A stretch of DNA of 64,000 nt from Pelomyxa schiedti (taxonomy: Eukaryota > Protista > Evosea), in NCBI GenBank assembly GCA_020536535.1, contig JAHLWZ010000817.1:1-64000 (forward strand). Reading direction: 5' to 3'. Positions within the stretch are counted from its first letter, which is position 1. Each line of letters opens with the position of its first letter. The position numbers were made by a program, and so were the translations under genes. Positions 7,660-59,200 of this stretch are shown here, in pieces. The notes under the pieces were generated by a model, which was not told where the DNA came from, did no database searches, and worked only from the letters and a program-made list of their open reading frames with translations.

Positions 7660-9241
7660 ATGGGTGGCACTCAAAGCACTACGACGACGGCTGCACCCGT
7701 CGCGCGACCGGTCCAACTTGGAGGAGGCTCCTCGGTCTCGGGTGGCGCCCCGGCCACCGGCGGCGGTGCACGGCAACCAAACCAAGTTGGGGGGTGCGGC
7801 GCGGCCGCGCCTGCGTTGCTGGGACAAGCGGGCGACGACAAGGCTGCGACAACAAGCGGCAACAACGGCGTCGACGGCTCCGAGTGGTTTCGCTTCTTTG
7901 AGGAGCAGGCGCTGACGGTCGCGTGTGCTAGAGGCCGGGAAGGGAATGATGGGAAGGCTGCTGCCGCCGCCGCGGAGAAGCGTAAGGGGATCGTGGGTGG
8001 CCTGCCCGGGATTATGGGAACCGCGCCGGGGCTTGGGGATTTGCCGGTGGAGGCGCTGGCCGAGATTGTGGGATGCGCTTGGCCGTCTGTGCCGTGTTGG
8101 TGTCATTCTTCTTTTCATTCGATTATTGCATATCTTCCATACAATCAGTATCCGACTCACTTTTTTAGGTATTGTTCTTGCCGGTGGTATTTTCGATAGG
8201 TCAATTGGACCCACTAACAGTGCTGTGGCCTTTCATCCTTTAAAGCACAAATGGGCACGCCTGCCCCCAATGACGAGGGCAAGGCAGGATGCCAGTGCAT
8301 GTGTGGTCAGAAATACACGGCTATATGTCACAGGCGGCTCAAACTCAGAGACCCCTTCCATGAATTCTTTAGATGTATTTGACTCCCACAGAATATGCTG
8401 GCAATTGCCACCTGGTGAGGAATCCGCTGTGTCCTGGTCTCGCATGTGCTGGCCCAGGTGTAACCATACCGCTGTTTCTGTCGGTGACTGCATATATGTC
8501 TTTGGCGGAGATGTGCCTGGGGAGATAATGAGTAGTGAATCTTCGTCCACGGCCGAATTCCTGGATACCAGAGAGTCACAGTGGAGGGTGTTGCCGTCAA
8601 TGCCTGTTCCTAGACGAAATGCTTCTGGATTCTCTGTTGATGATTCTTATGTATGTATCTCCGGCGGATTGTTTGGAGGACATCTAGGGTACACCGTTCG
8701 CAGCTGCGATACATTTGATAGAAGGGCAAACTGCTGGCTTCCAGGGTGCAATACTTCACAAATGCCAGACTCTTGCTCAAGGCACTCGGCAGTTGTGCTG
8801 GGCGAAGAAAAATCCGTACTCGTTGGGTCCGATTCCCATCCAGAAATGAATGTTGCAGCTATCTCCTCAAAACAGGCCAATGACTTGCACACAAAAAGGG
8901 TTCTTGTACTTGGTGGTGTAGGACCCTACTGCAACGCAAATACCCGGATATTTCAGTGCATGTTAAGTAAGACAAACGAGCCCTCAGGGAGATACCGAAA
9001 TCAGAGCTGGAGCTATCACAAAGCCACGCTGCCCCCCCTGTTATGGCATCAACATAGCACTGCCGTAGCGGTGGCTAACACTGTCTATATCTTCAGCGCC
9101 GAAGAGGAAGTTCCATTTGGCAACAATAACAAAACAGTCCATGTGTGGGATACTGACACTGATGTGTGGCAACATTTTCCCATGTACCTTAATAAATCCT
9201 GGAAAAACGGAGTGGCAGCCGTAGTCCATTCCCGTTGCTGA
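7660..9241 (+). CDS. F-box-like / kelch-repeat protein with putative N-myristoylation motif
   Basis: MGGTQS N-terminus; LGDLPVEALAEIVGCAW F-box-like segment; after one intron, kelch repeats (RLYVTGG..W; CIYVFGG..W..LPSMPVPRR; VCISGG; VLVLGG). Confidence 0.85.
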
Positions 9242-11593: not shown

Positions 11594-14500
11594 TCAAGAA
11601 AAGAAGGCGAGGAATTCGCGCACCCCTTGTGGCTTTTGTGCTTTGGCTAGCCGGAACATGGCTTCTGCTTTGGCTTTGTCATGTGCTACTCCGTAGCCGT
11701 AAAATAGGCACTTGCAGGCTCCTAGTTGTGCAGCCCAGAAGCCTTGCTCATCGGCGATGGTGGAATAAATTTTCCAGGCCGAGGCCTGATACTCGGTGCG
11801 GGTGCGGGAGTCGCAGCCTGATAATAGCGAATCGGTTATGAGCTGGTCTGCTTGCTTGACCTTCGCTCGTGCATAGTTGGGATGTAGAGCTTGCTCTAGG
11901 TAGAGTTTTGCTAGTTCTTGGACTTCTATGAGCTTGGTGCTTGGTGCATAGCCAGCAGCGACAAGTAATGATAAGCGCAGATAGGCACGGTGGTCCTGCT
12001 GTTGATGTGGCTTATTCATTACGTAGGCGCACTTCTGGAAGCAGTCATAGGCCTGGTACAGGTTCTTCCCAAGTAAAGATGGAACTCCTTTTTCATATAA
12101 CCTTCCACACCGATACAAGCCCATTACATCCTCAGCCTTTCTTGACTCCTCTAATAGATATATTATCTGCTGGTATGATGGTCTTGGCGAGTATAACAAG
12201 GCTACTGCATGGTATACATAAAGCCTCGCTTTTACAGCTGGATCTGGGGCTTGTCTTTCCAACACAGAAAAGAAATCGCCGGTATGCAGCTCGACCTGGG
12301 AGTCTTGGAGTAAAGTACGCGCTTGTCTGGTAAAGAATCTTGGCAAATACTTCATCCAACGTCCTTTTGCTTGAAGGCTTTGCTCTTTGTCAATAAGTTC
12401 ACGAAGTCTGCTCACAGATAGGATTTTTTTTTTGACCTCCGTCAACATTGTCATGTCCGCAGCACACAGTTCACGTAAGACGACAAGAGTGGGAGGAAGG
12501 ATGGGAATCTTCGAAAATGAAATCTTGGAGAGCAATGATGACAGCATCTTTGTATCCTTAAGGTCAAATAAGAGGGTAGCTAGAGGAGCGAGGCTTTGAA
12601 GTTTCTCAGGTAGAATCACTTCAGGGACCTGTGAAGTAGGCAAGTGTCCAGTGACTGGAATGAAATCGGGGTTGCTTTGAGCTCTGTTCGTGCTTGGGTT
12701 TCCTGACTGCATTTGAGGCTGGGCTTGTTGGGGCGGCTGCAGTGGGTGCACTTGAAGTGGAATTTGGTGAGGGGAGGTTTGTGGCAAATTCCCAAAATGA
12801 GATTGTGGGTACCCAAACCCTTGAGGTTGCTGGGGGATTGGCGGTTGTGGAGGTATATTATACTGCTGTGGAAGTGCGTATGATTGTGGTTGAGATTCAG
12901 GGGAGGTTCCAAACATGTATGGTTGGCAATATGGTTGAAAGTACTGATGTTGAGCACCCATGGAAGGCAAAGGCTGGGTCTGAGATGGGTATGGCTGGAA
13001 CTGAGGGTACTGAGAGAACTGAGATGGGGGATATATTGTTGGTTGGGGCGCGAATTGGGTTGAGGGTGGGTTGGTGGGAGGTGGTTGATGTGGCTGTGGG
13101 ACTTGTGGAGGTGCGTTTGGTGGACGAGCGCGTGCGTCTTCAAGAGGAGATGGCAGTGGGATTTTGGGCGGAAGTGGTAGGAGTTCTGCTGGGAGTCGCA
13201 GTTGTGAAGAAGTGTTGGCGTGAAGGGCCGCTGCAGGTGTCGGTAGTGGGTGTAGGTCTTGAGGTAGTGGTGGTGGAGGTGGAGGAGGTGGAGGAGGGGG
13301 AGGGGGAGGCGGAGGCGGAGGGGGTGGAGGTGGAGGGAGCATACTTGTTGTCTCTTTGGGTGCAAGTTGAGTTGTGTTATGAGGCTTGGTTTTCTTTTCC
13401 AAGCGTTTGAGTCTCGGACGTGGAAGTTGTGATTCTTCACATGAAAGCTGGGTCTGTTGTTGATTTTGTTTGTTGTTGGGTTCCACAGTTTCAGAGATTG
13501 GCTTATTTTTCTTTCTTCTCTTTTCCTTTTTTCCAGAATTGGCATTGTTAAACTTAGGCTGCCCTTGTTGAACAGGCTCTTGAATTGCAACTTTTGGTTT
13601 CTTTGGTGCAGGTTGCTGTGGCTGTTCTTCTTTCGTGTCAGGAAATGTCTCCTCCTTAGAGACCTGTTCCCTTAGCGTATGGCTTGCAGACTCTTTGATG
13701 TGATCATTGTTTCCAGGCTCCTGTGGTTGTATAGGATTGACAAGTTCCTGTGATTGCAAAGGCTTGGTTTTTTCTTGTAATTGTTTAGCAGCCACCAGTT
13801 CTGGTGGTGAGTCTGTAGGAACGGCTACTATTACATCCACAGAACTCGACTGGCGTTCATCTTGCACAATAGATGTGTCCAGTATCTTTCTCACCTGGGG
13901 TTGACTTGATTCAACTGACACGATAGGATCTTGTGGAGGAGGTGTTGCTTTATTGGGTTCATCGTCTACCATACTTGGCTCATTGTCATGCAGGATGATT
14001 GTGTGAGAATTAGATTTCAGTAGCCTCTGCCGTTCCTGGGAGTGCCAAAACGTCAGCAACTCCTCCAATGTGACTTTTGACTGCAACATTTCTCTGCCAA
14101 GTTTTTGGTGTAGGTTAAAGAGGTGCTCCTCAAGCCAATTCCACAATGTCTCAGCAGCTTTGCTCTTGTCTGCATGGTTACAGAGGTAATAAACACTCAA
14201 GTAGTGTGGTTATACCAATTTTTGCATCAGAGGCAACTGAAACAGATAAGAAAAGTGCAGGAGGGAGCTTTGACTTCTTCAGCAACATCAAAGCCCTTTT
14301 TTTAATCTCAGTTGTTGGCTCAGCATCACTTTGTGTTCCTATTAAACACAAAGCACGCAGTACACCAACAATTTGAGGCTCCAAGCTTTTTGGTTTTAAA
14401 AAACAAAGAAAACGAAATGAAGAATTAACGTACTCTACGAAAGCCTTCAAGTAGAGTTCGGCTTTGCACAACCGCCAGGACATTACCATAGATCTAACAT

Positions 14501-31767: not shown

Positions 31768-33096
31768 ATGAAGGCCGAGGACGACACGACGGCCGCGTGG
31801 CTGGAGCCGCAGTCGATAGACAAGACGTGCTCGAGCCAGCGATGTAAGCGTAAGACCAAAGTGTGGGAGATCCGGCCCGAGTACTGCCGCCGAACCCCGC
31901 GGCACCGCCTCTGCATGTCGTGTTTCCGCAAGTCCATGCGCCCCCGCGAGGGCTGCTGCCCCGTATGCGAGGAAATGGAGGGCCGCAGGATGATTGCCTC
32001 CACCGCCGCCGCAGCGGCCGCGGCCGCCGCCATCACCGCGACCGCCGACGCCGCGATGCTCATGGCGGCCTCTTCTTCCTCGTCTTCCGCGTCGTGCACG
32101 CCCGCGCCGCCATCCATGCCCCTTACAACGGGGCGTAGGCGCAGTAACAGTAATAGCAACAGCAGCAGCAACGGCATCGGCATCAACAGCAACAGCGGGT
32201 GCGCTGTGGCGTCTGCTGCTTCGTGCTCTTCTCCTGGGTGCTTCTGTGGGGGAGGAGGTGCCATGGGAGTCGGCGTCGGCGTTGGCGTGGCGGTCGGTGT
32301 GCAGCAGGGAGTAGACGGTGTCAATATTAGTGCGTATGGGGGCTGCGCGGAAGCGAATGGCGGAATGAGACTGGGCACTGGTACGGGTGGCTTTCTTGGG
32401 GATTCTCAAAGTTTCCCCTTGTACAGCTCACCAAAGCAGCAGCAATTTCAACAGCAACAGCAATTTCAACAACAACAGCAACAACAGCAATTTCAGAAAC
32501 AGACGGATATGCAGCAGGGAGGGCCAGGCCAGGGTATTAAACAGGAACAACATCAGCAGCAAGTGAATGTTTCCAGTATGGGAGGAGATGGCGGGAGCAG
32601 GCTTGGGGAAGAGATAGGCGCCGAACTCGTAACTTCTCCCCATTCTTCTCCGTCCTCCCCGCCGGACTACCCTGAAAGTACACATCCACAGGATGGCACC
32701 TCACTCAACAACGCAAGCTCCACCACAACCACGTCCGGAAATGTACCCCTTGCTCCCGCACACCAAGACGCACCACCCTCCAACACCACCCGGCAGTCAC
32801 ATAACATGCAACAACCCCCTCCGCAACCACCACCAAAGCTGGAATTAGACCGGCTGGTTACCGACGAGCTTGAGGCTGTTGTTCGCGTAAGGGACATACT
32901 AGCCCCAGGGGCAACTTGCCCCACCTGTGGACATAAGTTGCAAGTCTCTGGGGGCCAGTTATCTTCATTGTGGATTACCAATTGCCTTCACCTACTGTGC
33001 ACGCGGTGCTCCACGGATGTTGCCATGTATGGCACATGCCCCCTGTGTCACAAAGAGGTTACAAAGCTGATGAGGACCTACTTTGAAAGGAGATAG
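31768..33096 (+). CDS. Single-exon protein with N-terminal RING-like and C-terminal C3HC4 RING fingers (putative E3 ligase)
   Basis: CSSQRC..CRRTPRHRLCMSC..CCPVC; CPTC..CLHLLCTRC..CPLC; polyA/S/Q low-complexity middle. Confidence 0.8.
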   Translation: MKAEDDTTAAWLEPQSIDKTCSSQRCKRKTKVWEIRPEYCRRTPRHRLCMSCFRKSMRPREGCCPVCEEMEGRRMIASTAAAAAAAAAITATADAAMLMAASSSSSSASCTPAPPSMPLTTGRRRSNSNSNSSSNGIGINSNSGCAVASAASCSSPGCFCGGGGAMGVGVGVGVAVGVQQGVDGVNISAYGGCAEANGGMRLGTGTGGFLGDSQSFPLYSSPKQQQFQQQQQFQQQQQQQQFQKQTDMQQGGPGQGIKQEQHQQQVNVSSMGGDGGSRLGEEIGAELVTSPHSSPSSPPDYPESTHPQDGTSLNNASSTTTTSGNVPLAPAHQDAPPSNTTRQSHNMQQPPPQPPPKLELDRLVTDELEAVVRVRDILAPGATCPTCGHKLQVSGGQLSSLWITNCLHLLCTRCSTDVAMYGTCPLCHKEVTKLMRTYFERR

Positions 33097-36540: not shown

Positions 36541-39298
36541 ATGAAACGGTTCGTGACCTCGTTATCGGTGGGTCACTCTACCGGATCTGCGACAAGCACG
36601 GATCCTGTAGCAGTTACGGCACATGAAGCTTTCTTTGTCTCGGCATTCCATGGTGATATTGAAAAACTGCTCACTTTCATTGCGAGCGGGACGCCAGTGG
36701 ACTCTATTTGGCACCCTTACTTAGCAGATGTTTCTACCACTTGTTTGTTTGTTCCTTGGTTGTGACTGCTACTCTCAGACTGCGTTGCATTATGGCGCTC
36801 AATCTGGATCTGAGCACTGTGTGGCAGAATTACTGCGTCTTGGAGCTATGCCTAACGTGCAGGTAAACTCCGTTTCGTTCTTCTTTTGACTTATATGCCC
36901 AGTTGGTATGTACTTTACTGGTCTTGTTCTTTATTAAAGGATTTTTCTATGGGATATTGTACTACTCATTTTGGCAGCTGGTGAGCCTTTCTTCAGTAAG
37001 TTTATCCAATGTTAAACAGGCACTAACATGGGAAGATTTAATCATTTTTTTTACCTTGTCCACTATGCTATTTTGTCTCGTATTTTGGACAGCGAGTGTG
37101 TAACGATTTTGTTTTTACCAAAATTTAATACCAATAGAATCATGTTTGCCTTCCTTACTTCCTTTTCTAATGCTGACTTCATTTCCCTTCTTGCATATAC
37201 GAAACTCAAGGAGGTTTTTTTCCTTACTCCACCTCAGACTATCATTAACTGCATCACAAAAAAAAAAAATAGCCTGTATGTCCCTTGGTTCCTTTTCCCT
37301 ATTAATAATGACTCCATATTCTCTGCTTTTTCTGTTTAGTTTGTATGCCTTGTGCAGTCAAACCAAAACTAACAATTCCTTCCAGAGGGTGTGTTCACAG
37401 TCCTAAGTCCTTCACCTTTCTGCTCTTTAATCTCTACTACATGTTACAATTCATATTGACTGAATTTTACAGTGGGTATGACTTTTTTTTTTTTTTTTAA
37501 TTGCACCACTCTAACCCTTTCACAGGAGGTATGGTTTCCCTAATTTCTTCTTGCTCTCAACCGATTCATTTATCTTTTCCTGTGACAGAAGGTCCTTTCA
37601 ACTTCCAACCTTTCTCAGAGTACTAAGTAGTATCTCCAGGGTGATGTAAGTTGGCCACTCTTTATACAAGTCCCTTGATACCTTAATTAGACTCCACTCC
37701 ACATTGCCTGCCGCAATGGAGACACTAAAGTTGTAAAAGTACTACTTGAACGATCCAATGTCACTTTAAGGGTAATTCTGAAGTTCCCTCCATCAGACCA
37801 CAGACATCACCCAAAACACCTTTCAAGATTAAGTTATTGCAGAATAACAAACACTTGACGGCTTGTGAAGTTTCAAAGCTTGTTGCAACTAAAGAGCTTT
37901 TTCAAGCATCTACACACTCGTGTTTGGTAATATTCTGGCGTGCATTCAAATAAATTGAAGACTTGTTATAGGAAGTAGCACTTTGTGACACAGGTACAGG
38001 TAATATTTTTTTTCCTTTATCACATCTTTCCCCTCCCTGTCTTTCATTGACTACTATAAGAAACTCCAGCTGATAGTAATTTACCGTCTTCACTAAAAAA
38101 CCTTGAAATGGTAAAAAAAAATGCAACTTAAACAATGCAACTTGACGTGTTTTTCCTGCATCAGCAACTTTCTGTTGAAAAGCAGGAAAGAGACCTATTC
38201 TGTCGTGTAGCACTGCTCACTACGTTTCACTTCCGATACTTTGAGACTGTCCGTTTTGTTAGCACTGGTAACAATGCCGTCATCACGGAAGTCAGAGTGA
38301 AAATCCACCCAAGCCGGCTTCTTATTCTCAAGAGTGTTTTCGGCATCGATTGCACCACTAGCCCAAATCGCAACCCTAAGTAAGCAGTGTGTTCAGAATC
38401 CAACAGACCATACATAGATATGAGAATGAAATACTCATTGCAGGACATTTGCCAATGCACCCTTCAGTTGTACATCCTATTTCCTCCTTCATAGGCACTG
38501 TACCAGATGCTTGGAGAAATGACATTCCACACGTTCCACATTCTTGTGTGTAGGTTCAATCTACATTCTCATAACACTCGGCACAGGCGAGGGTTTCATG
38601 AACATGCCAGCATTCCACATTGTAATGCCACATGCAGGTAACGTAAACTAGTTTTTGCAGCTAATCTCTTGTTCAGGTGTTCCACTGAAATCATTCCTTA
38701 CTAAGTCTGGTGCTCCAGTACTGGACGTAGACTCACAGAAGATTAAAACGCTATTAAAGCAACTTCTATCAGCGATTGTGCATCTTGAAGATAACTTGAT
38801 TGTCCACAAGGCTCTGAAAAACGAACATATCCTTGTTTCTGAGGACCAAGTACTTTTCTTTCCTTTTTTTTCTTACAAACTCACAGAAAACAGGGAGTTT
38901 GTAATCTCAAACTGATTGATTTCGGTCTTGCTAGAATATGCTTAAACTCCGATCTCGACTGTGCTGTACCTGTGGATGACGTTCCCTGGGGTACGCCAAT
39001 GACACTACCTCCTGATGTTGCTGCCGGAATAGAGGCCACCATTCCACTTGGAGGCATTGTGAGGTTTTCTAAGGCTGATTCTTTTGCTGCCGGACTGGTC
39101 ATATGGGATATTCTATCACCACTACCAGGGGACTTCCCCACAGGAAAGTTATTCAATCCCAGCCATTTGCCACCAATTACCATTGGGTCAGTGAAGAACG
39201 ATACCACTTTTGCCGATGTACTCCTTTCACTCATGAATCCATTTCCCTGTGACCGCATGTCCGCAAAACAAGCACTGTTGCAACTAAGATTCCCCTAA
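36541..39298 (+). CDS. Ankyrin repeats plus PINK1-like kinase-fold domain, probably a pseudokinase
   Basis: TALHYGAQSGSEHCVAELLRLGA and TPLHIACRNGDTKVVKVLL ankyrins; kinase: LLILKSVF, LKQLLSAIVHLEDNLIVHKALKNEHILV, LKLIDFGLA, WGTPMTLPPDV, SKADSFAAGLVIWDIL. Exon structure at about 36900-37650 is unresolved. Confidence 0.7.
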
Positions 39299-39777: not shown

Positions 39778-41498
39778 CTAGGCTGAAATTTTGATTGGGT
39801 GAGCCTTTTCTATGCGGTCTATGACATGAGGGGGGAATCTAGATCTGTCATAGAAGCAACACCCCCTCATTGGAAGAGAGCCATATACTGATTCCGATAT
39901 TCTTCTTTCATATTCCACCAGTTCACCATAGTAGTAATTTGTGGAACTGGGATCCACATCAACATATGAGACTTCACCAATAGTGTGAAGGTGCGATTTG
40001 CCGGATTCTCGAAGTGCAGTATTGCAGATATTATACCCCCACTGTTCCTTCTGTGTTGCAGTTGCGGCTACCTAGATTTGAATTCAATTACTATGTGTAG
40101 GCTGAAGAGTCTTGGGGGAAATTCTGTACCATATCTGGAGTTACATAGCAATCATTTGGAACGGCAGAGATTTGATGAGTATCCAATAAGAGTTTCGTGT
40201 TGACTCCCATTCTACTTAGAACTCCCATAGTTTCATCTATCTGCTTCTGCGATCTCAAAACAAGAACTGCTGTTTCATTAGAAAGTGCTCGCAAAATAAT
40301 CTCAGCTGCAACTGCTAACCCCAGCTGCGGGGTTGGGTAGCACAAGACACAGTGGTCATGGAGTTTTAGACTACCCTGGGAGCGTGTGAGTGAAACGAAA
40401 ATCACAGTGGGAATGTACAATGGCATCCCCCACACATAGTGGAGATGAATCTATTCCCCGACACATTTGCACTGGTATCGAAGATAAAGGACTTCGATTC
40501 TGTTGCCTTGGTAAAAAAAAAAGAAAAAAATTGATTTGGTAGTGGGAAGAAATACAGTTGGAACTGCTCTGCCCCTTGATGTCTGGACTGCAATGACACC
40601 ATTAGGAGTGGTTGACACGAAGCTTGAATTACTGGAGCCCGAGAAATTGGAAAGGCTACAGCCAACCATCCCTAACAGCACGGCCGTTTTTTGACACATT
40701 GGCGCAATTTTGGTTGATGCCTCTTGAACATCACCCCTGTGGTTAAAGTTAGAAAAGAGGAAAGGAAGAAAGGGAATGAATCACACCATTGAGAAGAGCC
40801 AATGGTAGTCTTAGAAATGGAATCAGCAAGTTTTTCCAAATCTCTTTTGATGTCAGCCAGTGATGAGCATGTTTGTGACAGTGTTTGTGCTAAGAGAAAA
40901 GAAAGTTAGACAGTACGGGAAAAAAAAAGAAATTTAACCCACCAAGTTCTTCGTGTGGAGAAGCCAGTGGAGGCATGTTTAAAAGATTTCTTGTGTGAGA
41001 AAGTCCCTAATTATTCAGTCATAAACACAAAGACAATACAAGGAGGATGAGTACTTTTTCCCACCCAAGGTCAGCATTTTTTGTTCCATTGGAATTCTCA
41101 AGGTGGCTAGCTATTGCCTTGCAAACTGATACAGGGTCTACTCTTTCCTCTGCTCCATCAAGCTGATATGACAAGGTGCCACACACTAACTGCCGCGGGG
41201 ATGTGCCATTTGTGTTGGGGTTATTGTCACAACCAATGATAGGTGCTGGAGTGCCACTGTCACCAACAGAATTGCCCCTCAATACTGCGTACAGAGTGTC
41301 GCCGCTCTTTACACCAAAGGATGATAGTGGCGTTGGATCCTGTGACTTCAGTATCCTACCATTGAATACCAACAGGGTCCTCGACAGACACCACCCACAT
41401 TTCCCACTGACCCTACCACTCAACTCCATTACTGTGGTCTGAAAGAAAGAAACAAACCCATTCAGTTTTTGTATACAAAAGACACCAAAAAATCCCAG

Positions 41499-41529
<31 letters not shown>

Positions 41530-41607
41530 CTGTGGCGATATGTCAACAGCTAGTGGTGTCTCGTCACCATTAAACCGTACCACGATCTGCAACGCGCCGT
41601 CGTACAT
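39778..41607 (-). CDS. Ubiquitin-like domain + helical linker + C-terminal MEDS-like sensory domain, multi-exon
   Basis: UBL: LQIVVRFNG..ISPQTTVMELSGRV..LLVFNGRILK..LSSFGVKSGDTLYAVLRG. MEDS-like: HDHCVLCYPTP..AAEIILRALSNETAVLVL..LSRMGVN..HTIGEVSY..GELVEYERRISESVYGSLPMRGCCFYDRSRFPPHVIDRIEKAHP, with intron 40072-40129 inside the domain. Confidence 0.75.
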
Positions 41608-56241: not shown

Positions 56242-59200
56242 ATGAGGACAAGAGGGTTGGGACCAGGGGGATATGGAAAGTCCAACTCGAACAGCGACGC
56301 TGGCAAACTTTTCAACGGGTTTTTGTTTTATTGCTCGTTTGGTTGTTTTTTTCCTCTTATTTTTTTTAAATATTACAATTAGTATTTTCGTTATTACTTT
56401 TAAGTTGTGTTTTTTATGGAATTGTCTGCTACTTACTGACTTATTTTTTTTTTTCTCTGTCACTTTAACTGTATGTTTGTGTGTAGCCTGCGGCGTTCCA
56501 GTGATACCAACCCACAGCAGCAACATTCCCAACAAAATCACCGAGCGTCTACTCTAATGAAGGTTTGTTCCTTTTTTGTTTATTTTACAAATGAACTTTC
56601 CCAAGGAATGGGGACTCACAGCGGCAGATGAAGCCCTATCTGTGCCCAAAAAGCAAAGCAAACTCACAGAACAACAAAGGGAACTTGAAAAATTATTGAA
56701 GGTTGTATTATTGTGTAAACTGCCTGCTTAACAGTAACAAAAGGCTGAAGAGGGGCAAATAGCTGCCCTGGAGAAATTATCTCAATTATTTACTTCTGAT
56801 CCTGCTGGAAAGAAAAAGACTGATAACGAACTTGCTGAGCATCAGAATCAGGTTTCCTTCCGGCACATTTCTTGCAGTAACACACATCAGGCTGCCAGTC
56901 TCAAGACTGGGCTCTCCAAGGTGCAAACTCAACTAAGTGGTCTAACAGGTTATGTAGCAACGCCCGAGACTGAACCAGTGGTACCAACCCCAAATACAGT
57001 ATCTAAATGTGCAATAACTCACTATCCCCGTCACAGTTACGGTCTTCTGGCACCACTTGTATGCTTTCAGTATCCACTGGCCAAGCCGAAAAGGACTTGG
57101 GTGATGCTCGAGTGATTGAGGGAATAGCTCCGGTACCACAAAATCCGGAAGAAACGAGTAACACCCTTGTGGAAGCGTGCCGGCGTGGTGAAGTAGGAGC
57201 GGTAACGAAGTTGCTGGCTATGCTGCCAACGTCGCCACCACAACAATCTCACGTTAACACCAGCTTTGGAGTGAACTATGTGAACAAGACTGGAGAGACA
57301 TGCTTGCATGTTGCTTGCGACATGGGACATGTTGAAATCGTAAGAGTTCTGCTTCAACAGCCCAACTTGGACTTGAACCTTACCCGCCCTCTGCTCTACT
57401 GTACAAAGGCTGCACGTTCCCAAATAGTAAAGCTTATGCTAGGAGCAATGGTGGAGGCCGCGTGCGCAGCTGAATCACGCAATGGAGAGTTGGAAGAAAA
57501 AGAAAGAGAGGAAACTATACAGCACGTCGGGGCTACCTTTGTTGCAGCTGCCAAGAATGGACTCAAGGATATAGTTGCGACAATGCTGACTTTACCTCCG
57601 ATCTTGAGACCCAGGGTGAACTTCGAGAACTCGGAGGGAACTGCACTAAGTACAGCCTGCAGAGAGGGGCATGCTGGGGTGGTGGATCTACTGCTCAAGG
57701 AGCCAAGTCTTGACTTGAACTGCGGTGATCCTCTGTGGTATGCCTCTCAGGCTGGCCATCTAGTAATCGTGAATATGCTTCTGTCCCACCCTCGCACTGC
57801 AGTAAACAAGATGAACCTTCAACACAAAACCCCACTGGTGGTTTCAATTCTCCACAACAGACCTGATGTTGCTCGAGCCCTGATTTCCCATGGCGGATCT
57901 ATCCCAAAGGCTTGCGAAGAAGAGGTCTTGGCCAAGATAGGGTATAAGGGACTCTACACTTTGTTTTCACAAGGTTCCCCTCAGTGCATGCTTCCTCTGC
58001 CTAATGCTTTTTAGCAACCAGTATTGAGCTTTATCAGCGACGGCAAGATGAACAATCAACAAAGCAACAGCTGGAGAAGCAGATAATGGACTTGGAAGAC
58101 CGGAGCAAGACACCAGGTAGAGCTACTTACCTTAACCGATTTATTTACAACAAGTTAAAGATACCAACCGCACCCAAGATTCCACTGAGTTAACCAACAG
58201 TAAGAATGGTTTAACAAAAGACTCTTTTCACTTTCTTTCAAGAACTATGTGAATTGCAAGCTCGAGTAGAGACCTTGGAGCAGGAACTTGCAGACCAGAG
58301 ATCAAGTACTATTTCCTTTTATCAAGTCGAACTCACTTCATTGAAGTGGCTGCTCTCGATGCTGAACTCTATGTCAAATTAGAGTCGTGTAAGTATTACA
58401 GTACTGTGCACTTTTAATCCTATGTGCAGATAGTGATCACGTCTTATTACACTTGCAACAAGGTGTTTGGTGTAATGTTCTTCCTGAATGCCAGAATTTA
58501 TCATCTGTAACTATAACGCTTTCTGGTCGCAGTCCCTTTTCAGAGACTATTTGTCGGTTTACTCCGCTTGATAAGGTATTTCATCCTACAGTATGTACTG
58601 TTTTCACCCCAGAAAAGGTTGTAAAAATTGTCATTCAACGAAAGTTTGGAATTAATGAAGCTGAACAACTTGTTTTTGCAAAATGCGGCGATACTGAGAC
58701 CCCACTTGCGGATTCTTCTCTCACCTTAGCCAGTCTAGATTCTGCCAAGCTTGAAATCGAAGTGAAGGTCAAACCACTGTTGTCAATCCAAGAAAAGAAT
58801 TTGGAATCTATAACAACGATCGGAACAGGCTCATATGGTCTCGTGTCTAAAGAATGTTTGCATTCTCCTTTTAGTGAACAAGTGAAAATTGTGGCAGTGA
58901 AGTCACTTCATGAAGCAATAAGATCAGAACTTCACATTGATAACTTATGGAGAGAGTACAAGGTTGCAATCCATCCAACCCCTGACTAAATGGGAAAAAA
59001 GATCGCATCCAGCTTGCGTCACCCAAACATAGTGAATTGCATTGGCACATGTTTAAACAGTTCAAGAGGTCTATGCATTGTGTATGAACTTGCAGAATTT
59101 AGCCTTAGGCAGCTTACCGAGAATGTACTTTCTCCACATTACTCAATTAACATAACGGTACAGAGAGGGCTGAGCTTTCAAGAGATTATTGCTATTGGAC

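Follow-up and report, generated by a model that had tools for sequence, protein, structure and literature searches.

The DNA analysed here, called the window throughout, comprises 64,000 nucleotides of contig JAHLWZ010000817.1 from the anaerobic amoeba Pelomyxa schiedti. Its minus strand carries Pelo_11478, a gene whose 476 aa product is deposited as a "hypothetical protein" [Pelomyxa schiedti] (GenBank KAH3756709.1, here P0020) and is encoded exactly by positions 39778-41607. We are highly confident of its identity and architecture: an N-terminal ubiquitin-like (UBL) domain, a conserved middle region and a C-terminal MEDS domain (Table 1). When P0020 was threaded onto the window, 476 of 476 residues were reproduced by eight exons. 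The seven introns are all GT..AG and measure 91, 48, 53, 50, 56, 43 and 58 nt from 5' to 3'. The reading frame opens with ATG at 41607-41605 and closes with a TAG stop at 39780-39778, and a tblastn search of P0020 against the window returned exon 8 at 100% identity. Gene models of P. schiedti were built with Augustus and PASA/EVM on single-cell transcriptomes, and the genome has a mean of 7.4 introns per gene (PMC8887013), so that seven short introns are typical of it. G+C content near Pelo_11478 is 43-45%, inside the 40-54% range of the window. The first intron also contains an unbroken run of about 30 T (window 41497-41526; A on the plus strand), and T-rich tracts precede the acceptor sites of other introns of this gene as well.

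The original prediction, made from the letters of this DNA, had proposed that one eukaryotic gene, interrupted by an intron, encodes a UBL at the N-terminus and a MEDS domain at the C-terminus, and both threading and Pfam agree with it. The ends that it gave are the exact ends of the coding sequence, and the 58-nt intron that it described is real and lies in phase 0 within MEDS; its counterpart in a paralog is removed in a spliced transcript. Its manual splice held as far as an intron-containing UBL-MEDS gene is concerned, but it had overlooked two small exons (41006-40943 and 40499-40419), which were exposed by aligning the paralog P0001 to the window. A protein search seeded with P0001 matched P0001 itself and P0020 only. 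The public record of P0020 carries a precomputed Pfam MEDS match.

Several observations join the parts into one gene. Exon 2 is one open exon of 384 nt that runs from the interior of the UBL as far as GWEK|GL, the conserved motif with which the middle region starts. In a Trinity transcript of Mastigella eilhardi (P0007), the middle region and MEDS lie in a single open reading frame (ORF). For the paralog P0014 a spliced transcript exists (Logan contig L053, run SRR23919877), from which two introns have been removed.

Table 1. Features of Pelo_11478 in window coordinates, with the evidence for each.
Feature	Position	Strand	Basis
Pelo_11478 coding span	39778..41607	-	exact threading of P0020; tblastn
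Pelo_11478 exons, high to low	41607-41530, 41438-41055, 41006-40943, 40889-40787, 40736-40556, 40499-40419, 40375-40130, 40071-39778 (including stop)	-	threading
91-nt phase-0 intron splitting the UBL	41529-41439	-	threading
UBL, residues ~5-80	41277..41607	-	PF00240; AF2 pLDDT ~90; Foldseek; alignment to ubiquitin
Middle region, residues ~128-241, exons 2-5	40643..41135	-	AF2 secondary structure, pLDDT 60-90; conservation
MEDS domain, residues 304-471 (exons 7+8)	39796..40357	-	Pfam PF14417; AF2 pLDDT ~90; Foldseek; signature residues
58-nt spliceosomal intron in MEDS	40072..40129	-	gtacag...atctag, phase 0; threading

Against Pfam PF14417, Pelo_11478 scored 62.6 bits (E 5e-17, cutoff 29.8) with the entire profile covered (1-161 of 161), so the MEDS domain named in the original prediction was recovered by HMMER in the spliced protein. 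The scores for MEDS and for the UBL (given below) lie far beyond what chance would produce. Both halves of the domain contribute: exon 7 alone (40130-40375) gave 23.4 bits on profile positions 1-72, and exon 8 alone (39781-40071) 38 bits (E 1.9e-9) on positions 92-161. The paralogs reached 46.9-51.6 bits. Ten residues are common to amoebal and bacterial MEDS domains (H305, Y310, G354, Y374, G403, G411, Y433, E434, C451 and H470). Among these H305, Y310, G411 (in IGE), Y433-E434, C451 and H470 were identical in 8-9 of the 9 amoebal and 8-10 of the 10 bacterial sequences, the bacterial set being Streptomyces only. The amoebal proteins add an invariant H303, which results in an HDH motif, plus N371, S402 and F458. 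As judged from these alignments, the strict keeping of the signature residues suggests a retained biochemical role, which may involve a ligand, a metal or a defined partner.

Structure prediction with AlphaFold2 (AF2) gave the MEDS domain a predicted local distance difference test score (pLDDT) of about 90, and the Foldseek matches of the model of residues 300-476 were KaiC CI (4tla, 4tlc), FlaH (4yds) and RAD51 paralogs/DMC1, over 155-183 columns. Target-normalised template modelling (TM) scores were 0.45-0.51 for KaiC CI/single-domain targets, at about 10% sequence identity, and a MEDS profile found a weak KaiC sequence match (E 0.33). A sequence search of the PDB found no solved MEDS structure, and a regular-expression search of P0020 for the Walker A P-loop (G-x4-GK[ST]) found none. 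MEDS has been classed by Galperin et al. 2018 as "iKaiC", an inactivated KaiC-like ATPase domain, and the iKaiC class is discussed there as a signalling-hub domain in archaea (PMC5847659). The KaiC-like fold without a Walker A motif agrees with this class. On the predicted model, the MEDS domain of Pelo_11478 is probably a prokaryotic-type alpha/beta domain, KaiC/RecA-like but inactivated, and ATP binding would not be expected. The original prediction had treated MEDS as a sensor of small molecules or C1 compounds. The literature offers this as a gene-context prediction, and it sits uneasily with an inactivated KaiC-like fold; according to PMC11507031, small-molecule sensing by MEDS goes back to a context-based prediction of 2005 and is repeated later as a hypothesis, while bacterial MEDS regulators are located in dichloromethane and epoxyethane pathways.

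At the N-terminus, residues 1-90 reached 28.7 bits against Pfam PF00240 (ubiquitin; cutoff 25.4), and the scan of the whole protein gave 24.2 bits. A phmmer search of the PDB with the UBL returned ubiquitin, ISG15, Dsk2, Rad23 and ubiquilin-3. Foldseek superposed the UBL model on ubiquitin with target-normalised TM scores of 0.85-0.92 and a root-mean-square deviation of 1.4-2 Å, and found further structural matches in the UBLs of ubiquilin-3, Ddi1 and BAG1. In the HMMER alignment V50, Y76 and V78 stand at ubiquitin I44, H68 and V70, and by this alignment the UBL keeps most of the ubiquitin Ile44 patch; N13 stands at ubiquitin L8 and R54 at K48. The C-terminal Gly-Gly is absent: the UBL ends in ...LYAVLRGN as against LRLRGG in ubiquitin, and the paralogs read ILQSTP, VCFSPR and VTINPK at this place. 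The domain is therefore an integral UBL and not a conjugatable modifier. No Pfam match to UBA or UIM was obtained in Pelo_11478 at E up to 1.

Between the two domains lies the middle region, for which the AF2 model shows two short helices followed by a long antiparallel helical hairpin (171-202 and 210-241). It recurs in all paralogs and the Mastigella transcript, with the conserved motifs GWE.GL, LAQTLSQTC.SL and CQKTA..LG. Pfam and NCBIfam scans gave no family for it, and a sequence search of the PDB nothing beyond designed antiparallel coiled coils and comparably weak matches. Some resemblance to the BAG6 domain may exist but is not claimed here. The AF2 model of the full protein was built on a 24-sequence alignment and agrees with a second model of residues 120-476; pLDDT was about 90 at residues 5-80 and 300-476, and the linkers 83-126 and 263-295 are disordered. 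Pfam and NCBIfam scans of Pelo_11478 gave no match to HisKA, HATPase, STAS or HTH; apart from MEDS, the UBL was the sole domain recognised.

We then asked how widely this architecture occurs. When exon 8 was compared by phmmer with 1.84 billion representative proteins, 13 matches were obtained, the best being P0001; a word-indexed protein search with the same exon gave no match, owing to its length window and its word index. Three of them (P0004, P0005 and P0006) are repeat proteins (SRCR, Big_3_5) without a MEDS match and were rejected as spurious. P. schiedti has four paralogs, namely P0020, P0001 (Pelo_8467, 467 aa), P0008 (Pelo_13107) and residues 1-477 of P0014, which agree in the order of their parts and have introns at homologous positions and in matching phases; the phase-0 intron within MEDS is present in all four, after aa 379, 367, 356 and 376. 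P0014 is KAH3759008.1 ("Beta-galactosidase bgaB", 1448 aa; L052:3001-8922, JAHLWZ010000721.1), where this fourth UBL-middle-MEDS paralog is joined to a glycosidase-like gene through a 399-nt "intron". This "intron" begins with GTATGA (Val, stop), and the transcript L053 reads through it, its ORF ending in ...TTV and then a stop. Thus, KAH3759008.1 is a merged model.

Outside P. schiedti, the short matches P0002, P0009, P0012/P0017 and P0013/P0019 all come from the European Nucleotide Archive assembly ERZ21831265. Its contigs (L001, L003, L005 and L006) are up to 200 kb long, and the neighbouring genes encode RCC1, filamin, copine and PUF proteins. With a hidden Markov model of the family, collinear UBL, middle and MEDS pieces were found at three of the four loci (L001, L005 and L006), the fourth being cut by a contig end. 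Against Pfam ubiquitin, the UBL exon piece of L001 reached 24.9 bits and that of L005 22.8 bits, and the piece of L006 had no Pfam match. This assembly presumably represents another archamoeba, with at least four diverged UBL-middle-MEDS paralogs. A search for paralogs, which the original prediction had suggested, thus found four in P. schiedti, at least four in ERZ21831265, and the Mastigella eilhardi transcript with middle region and MEDS. Two scans of JGI metagenome contigs with amoeba-only patterns gave no match, nor did a scan of genome contigs with such patterns. The UBL-MEDS combination apparently constitutes a small, undescribed amoebal gene family.

With respect to its origin, the only prokaryotic protein matched at E<1e-3 in the exon-8 phmmer search was P0011, a MEDS-STAS protein of Streptomyces that scored 36 bits, with 40% identity across 67 residues; proteins of methanogens, Syntrophus, Vesiculincola and the Methanoregula symbiont were absent from the matches among the 1.84 billion representatives. 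A descent of the gene from methanogens or current symbionts found no backing in this unbiased search. A maximum-likelihood tree of MEDS domains unites the nine amoebal sequences in a single clade (100/100), in which P0020 and P0001 pair (99/99) and Mastigella groups weakly with P0014 and P0008 (85/79). The phylogeny thus gave a single amoebal clade against Streptomyces but did not place the donor; with Streptomyces as the only prokaryotic group sampled, the tree has little bearing on monophyly and none on the donor. The MEDS domain of Pelo_11478 is only about 20-23% identical to those of Streptomyces and sits on a very long branch.

The Streptomyces MEDS-STAS proteins (P0011, L008-L047) have the motifs R[GA]CCFYDR and [VL]EYE[RL]RI in common with the Pelomyxa proteins, a likeness that may stem from common ancestry or from convergence. 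Two results that might have pointed to a Streptomyces donor were rejected as evidence: a profile search with Streptomyces-only output, whose query alignment included P0011 and whose index relies on shared words, and a contig scan with R[GA]CCFYDR and [VL]EYE[RL]RI[SH][EH] (40 Streptomyces loci and two weak others), whose patterns were derived with P0011.

In the literature that we found, the MEDS domain (PF14417) is described from bacteria or archaea only, with no eukaryotic MEDS or UBL-MEDS architecture among the reports, and the paper on the P. schiedti genome contains no mention of MEDS or ubiquitin (PMC8887013). The original prediction was aware of no eukaryotic UBL-MEDS system either. Since MEDS is known from prokaryotes only in this literature, lateral acquisition is the simplest origin. 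The shared introns show a long residence of the gene in a eukaryotic genome, and together with the long branch and the multiple old paralogs they suggest that MEDS entered the Pelomyxa/Mastigella lineage long ago and did not come by a recent transfer from a present symbiont. We infer that MEDS was acquired once from a prokaryote by the Pelomyxa-Mastigella ancestor, then fused to a host UBL and duplicated.

The surroundings of Pelo_11478 support a nuclear amoebal origin of the contig, since its plus strand encodes a Kelch-repeat protein (window 7925-9238, 101 bits), an ankyrin-repeat protein (57007-58011, 116 bits) and a protein that ends in a RING finger (31768-33093); the exact threading of P0020 likewise identifies the window as nuclear DNA of P. 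schiedti. ORF fragments at 38655-39298 (plus strand) converge on the 3' end of the MEDS gene and by eye resemble a degenerate protein-kinase domain, in which VHKALKNEHILV replaces the catalytic loop and the end is C-lobe-like. The fragment at 38972-39295 had no Pfam match, and the locus may be a pseudokinase or a multi-exon gene. At 11597-14200 of the minus strand lies an open frame of 868 codons, Pro/Gln-rich, with a run of 23 prolines and no Pfam match, which coincides with a strong local GC skew (+0.30). The C-terminal part of this protein may resemble Sel1/TPR-type repeats.

Next we compared Pelo_11478 with systems known to contain either domain. The prokaryotic MEDS regulators considered were DcmR (HTH and MEDS), RsbA-type anti-sigma kinases (MEDS and HATPase), Streptomyces MEDS-STAS proteins and methanogen MEDS histidine kinases. 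Pelo_11478 is like them in its full-length PF14417 match and the ten signature residues, and like Streptomyces MEDS-STAS in the local C-terminal motif CCFYDR / EYE.RI. In contrast to them it is eukaryotic, has seven introns and places MEDS at the C-terminus, joined to a UBL and a helical hairpin where those regulators have a kinase, STAS or HTH output. From the RsbA family it is further set apart by its score against NCBIfam RsbA_anti_sig (NF041045), 30.1 bits versus a cutoff of 210, where only the C-terminal half of MEDS aligns. The predicted fold of residues 300-476 is like KaiC CI, FlaH and RAD51 paralogs, but whereas KaiC is a double-domain hexamer, Pelo_11478 has a single such domain and no Walker A. 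On the ubiquitin side, Rad23, Dsk2/ubiquilin, Ddi1, BAG1, BAG6 and midnolin likewise combine an N-terminal non-cleavable UBL, flexible linkers and a C-terminal functional module. Unlike the Rad23/Dsk2/Ddi1 shuttles and the BAG proteins, Pelo_11478 has no UBA, UIM, BAG or protease domain, and its C-terminal module is a prokaryote-type MEDS.

Taken as a whole, the explanation we lean towards, with some reserve, is that Pelo_11478 is a soluble UBL-domain protein of an Archamoebae-specific family, in which MEDS serves as the input or partner-binding part. How it might work can be proposed only tentatively, by analogy with UBL adaptors, and we hold this mechanism for possible but doubtful. The integral UBL beta-grasp (residues 5-80) would be the output, through which the protein, or a partner held by it, docks on ubiquitin receptors (the proteasome or UIM/UBA proteins, for example). 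It is followed by a disordered linker, then by the conserved antiparallel helical hairpin, which would be a dimerisation or spacer element, and finally by the C-terminal MEDS, which would be the input or partner-binding module. MEDS is given the input role because in prokaryotes it precedes kinase, STAS and HTH outputs, again an analogy.

A number of points weigh against this proposal. The UBL is poorly conserved in some paralogs (residues 1-100 of P0008 had no Pfam match and P0014 only 16 bits), and the Mastigella eilhardi ORF (P0007) is without a UBL. A domain that is weak or absent in some members may be dispensable or serve another purpose. Prokaryotic MEDS proteins carry MEDS at the N-terminus, opposite to the order seen here, and in the literature found no ligand has been demonstrated for any MEDS domain. 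Pelo_11478 has no UBA, UIM or other ubiquitin-system domain, and its link to the proteasome is one of analogy only. The original prediction had regarded the protein as rewired to the ubiquitin/proteasome system, a claim for which the presence of the UBL was the sole ground. No transcript spanning all of Pelo_11478 was seen. The AF2 alignments were shallow (24-28 sequences) and the predicted TM scores only 0.46-0.53, and domain packing is not predicted.

The main competing explanation does without small-molecule sensing and without the proteasome. MEDS would be a KaiC-like pseudo-ATPase scaffold or oligomerisation domain, the hairpin would dimerise, and the beta-grasp would be a generic interaction module comparable to the UBL/RBD-like domains of kinases and scaffolds; the whole would be a lineage-specific scaffold or regulator. 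The structural matches KaiC CI, FlaH and the RAD51 paralogs all form oligomers, a Walker A motif is missing, the iKaiC class is discussed as an archaeal signalling hub (PMC5847659), designed antiparallel coiled coils are all that the coiled-coil-like middle region matches, and the weak conservation or absence of the UBL in some members fits as well. However, by sequence the UBLs of P0020, P0001, L001 and L005 resemble ubiquitin, ISG15, Dsk2 and Rad23 more closely than they do other beta-grasp families, and V50, Y76 and V78 at ubiquitin I44, H68 and V70 make a pattern typical of receptor-binding UBLs. In addition, the signature residues of MEDS have been strictly retained along a very long branch, suggesting more than a structural role. 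We regard a pure scaffold as rather unlikely.

A further explanation, closest to the original prediction, is that a C1 or small hydrocarbon-type metabolite of the methanogenic endosymbiont or the sediment binds MEDS and switches UBL-dependent proteasomal targeting, making the protein a host sensor of symbiont state. It would be a narrower version of the UBL-adaptor proposal, and what supports it beyond that proposal is host ecology (PMC10579272). The assumed host with methanogens is correct: P. schiedti harbours and depends on Ca. Methanoregula pelomyxae, and the amoeba dies when methanogenesis is blocked (PMC10579272). Members of the family turned up in Pelomyxa, Mastigella and one related-looking assembly only, and an expansion such as theirs, to at least four paralogs per genome, is common for sensor families. 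H305, E434, C451 and H470, conserved from bacteria to amoebae, could form a ligand or metal site, and bacterial MEDS regulators occur in dichloromethane and epoxyethane pathways (PMC11507031). On the other hand, ligand binding by MEDS is a gene-context prediction, cited only as hypothesised (PMC11507031), an inactivated KaiC-like fold is often a protein-protein hub (PMC5847659), and the unbiased phmmer search found no close relative in methanogens or symbionts. Altogether this sensor appears quite improbable.

That the gene is an artefact, with UBL and MEDS as misjoined neighbours or MEDS as prokaryotic contamination, is hardly credible: although the genome comes from whole-genome-amplified single cells full of prokaryotic symbionts (PMC8887013) and one gene model of the family, P0014, was truly merged with a downstream glycosidase-like gene, MEDS is itself split by the canonical 58-nt intron among seven GT..AG introns of usual P. 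schiedti size, the local G+C lies within the range of the window, a single open exon joins the UBL to the middle region and the Mastigella transcript joins the latter to MEDS, and four separate P. schiedti loci, as well as an independent long-read-style assembly, show this architecture and these intron phases again. Both the two-gene and the contamination readings are essentially excluded.

Both domains were already known, as was the public "hypothetical protein" sequence; new are their recognition in one protein and its interpretation. The gene makes a clear case of a prokaryotic signalling module domesticated into a eukaryote-specific architecture, one that has grown into several genes in anaerobic amoebae whose life depends on consortia with methanogens. 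In the most far-reaching version of the adaptor proposal, UBL-MEDS proteins would be ligand- or partner-gated degradation or adaptor switches that arose in Archamoebae from a laterally acquired prokaryotic input domain, and which directly convert a signal tied to the obligate methanogenic and syntrophic endosymbionts (metabolite, metal or redox state) into engagement of ubiquitin receptors or the proteasome. This is a long shot, but if true, prokaryotic one-component sensor logic would have been grafted onto the eukaryotic ubiquitin system. If the UBL docks on ubiquitin receptors, Pelo_11478 would represent a new type of input-controlled UBL adaptor, and if it does not, the gene would still be a lineage marker and a likely case of lateral transfer for Archamoebae. 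Pelo_11478 also offers a tractable soluble protein for finding what MEDS binds.

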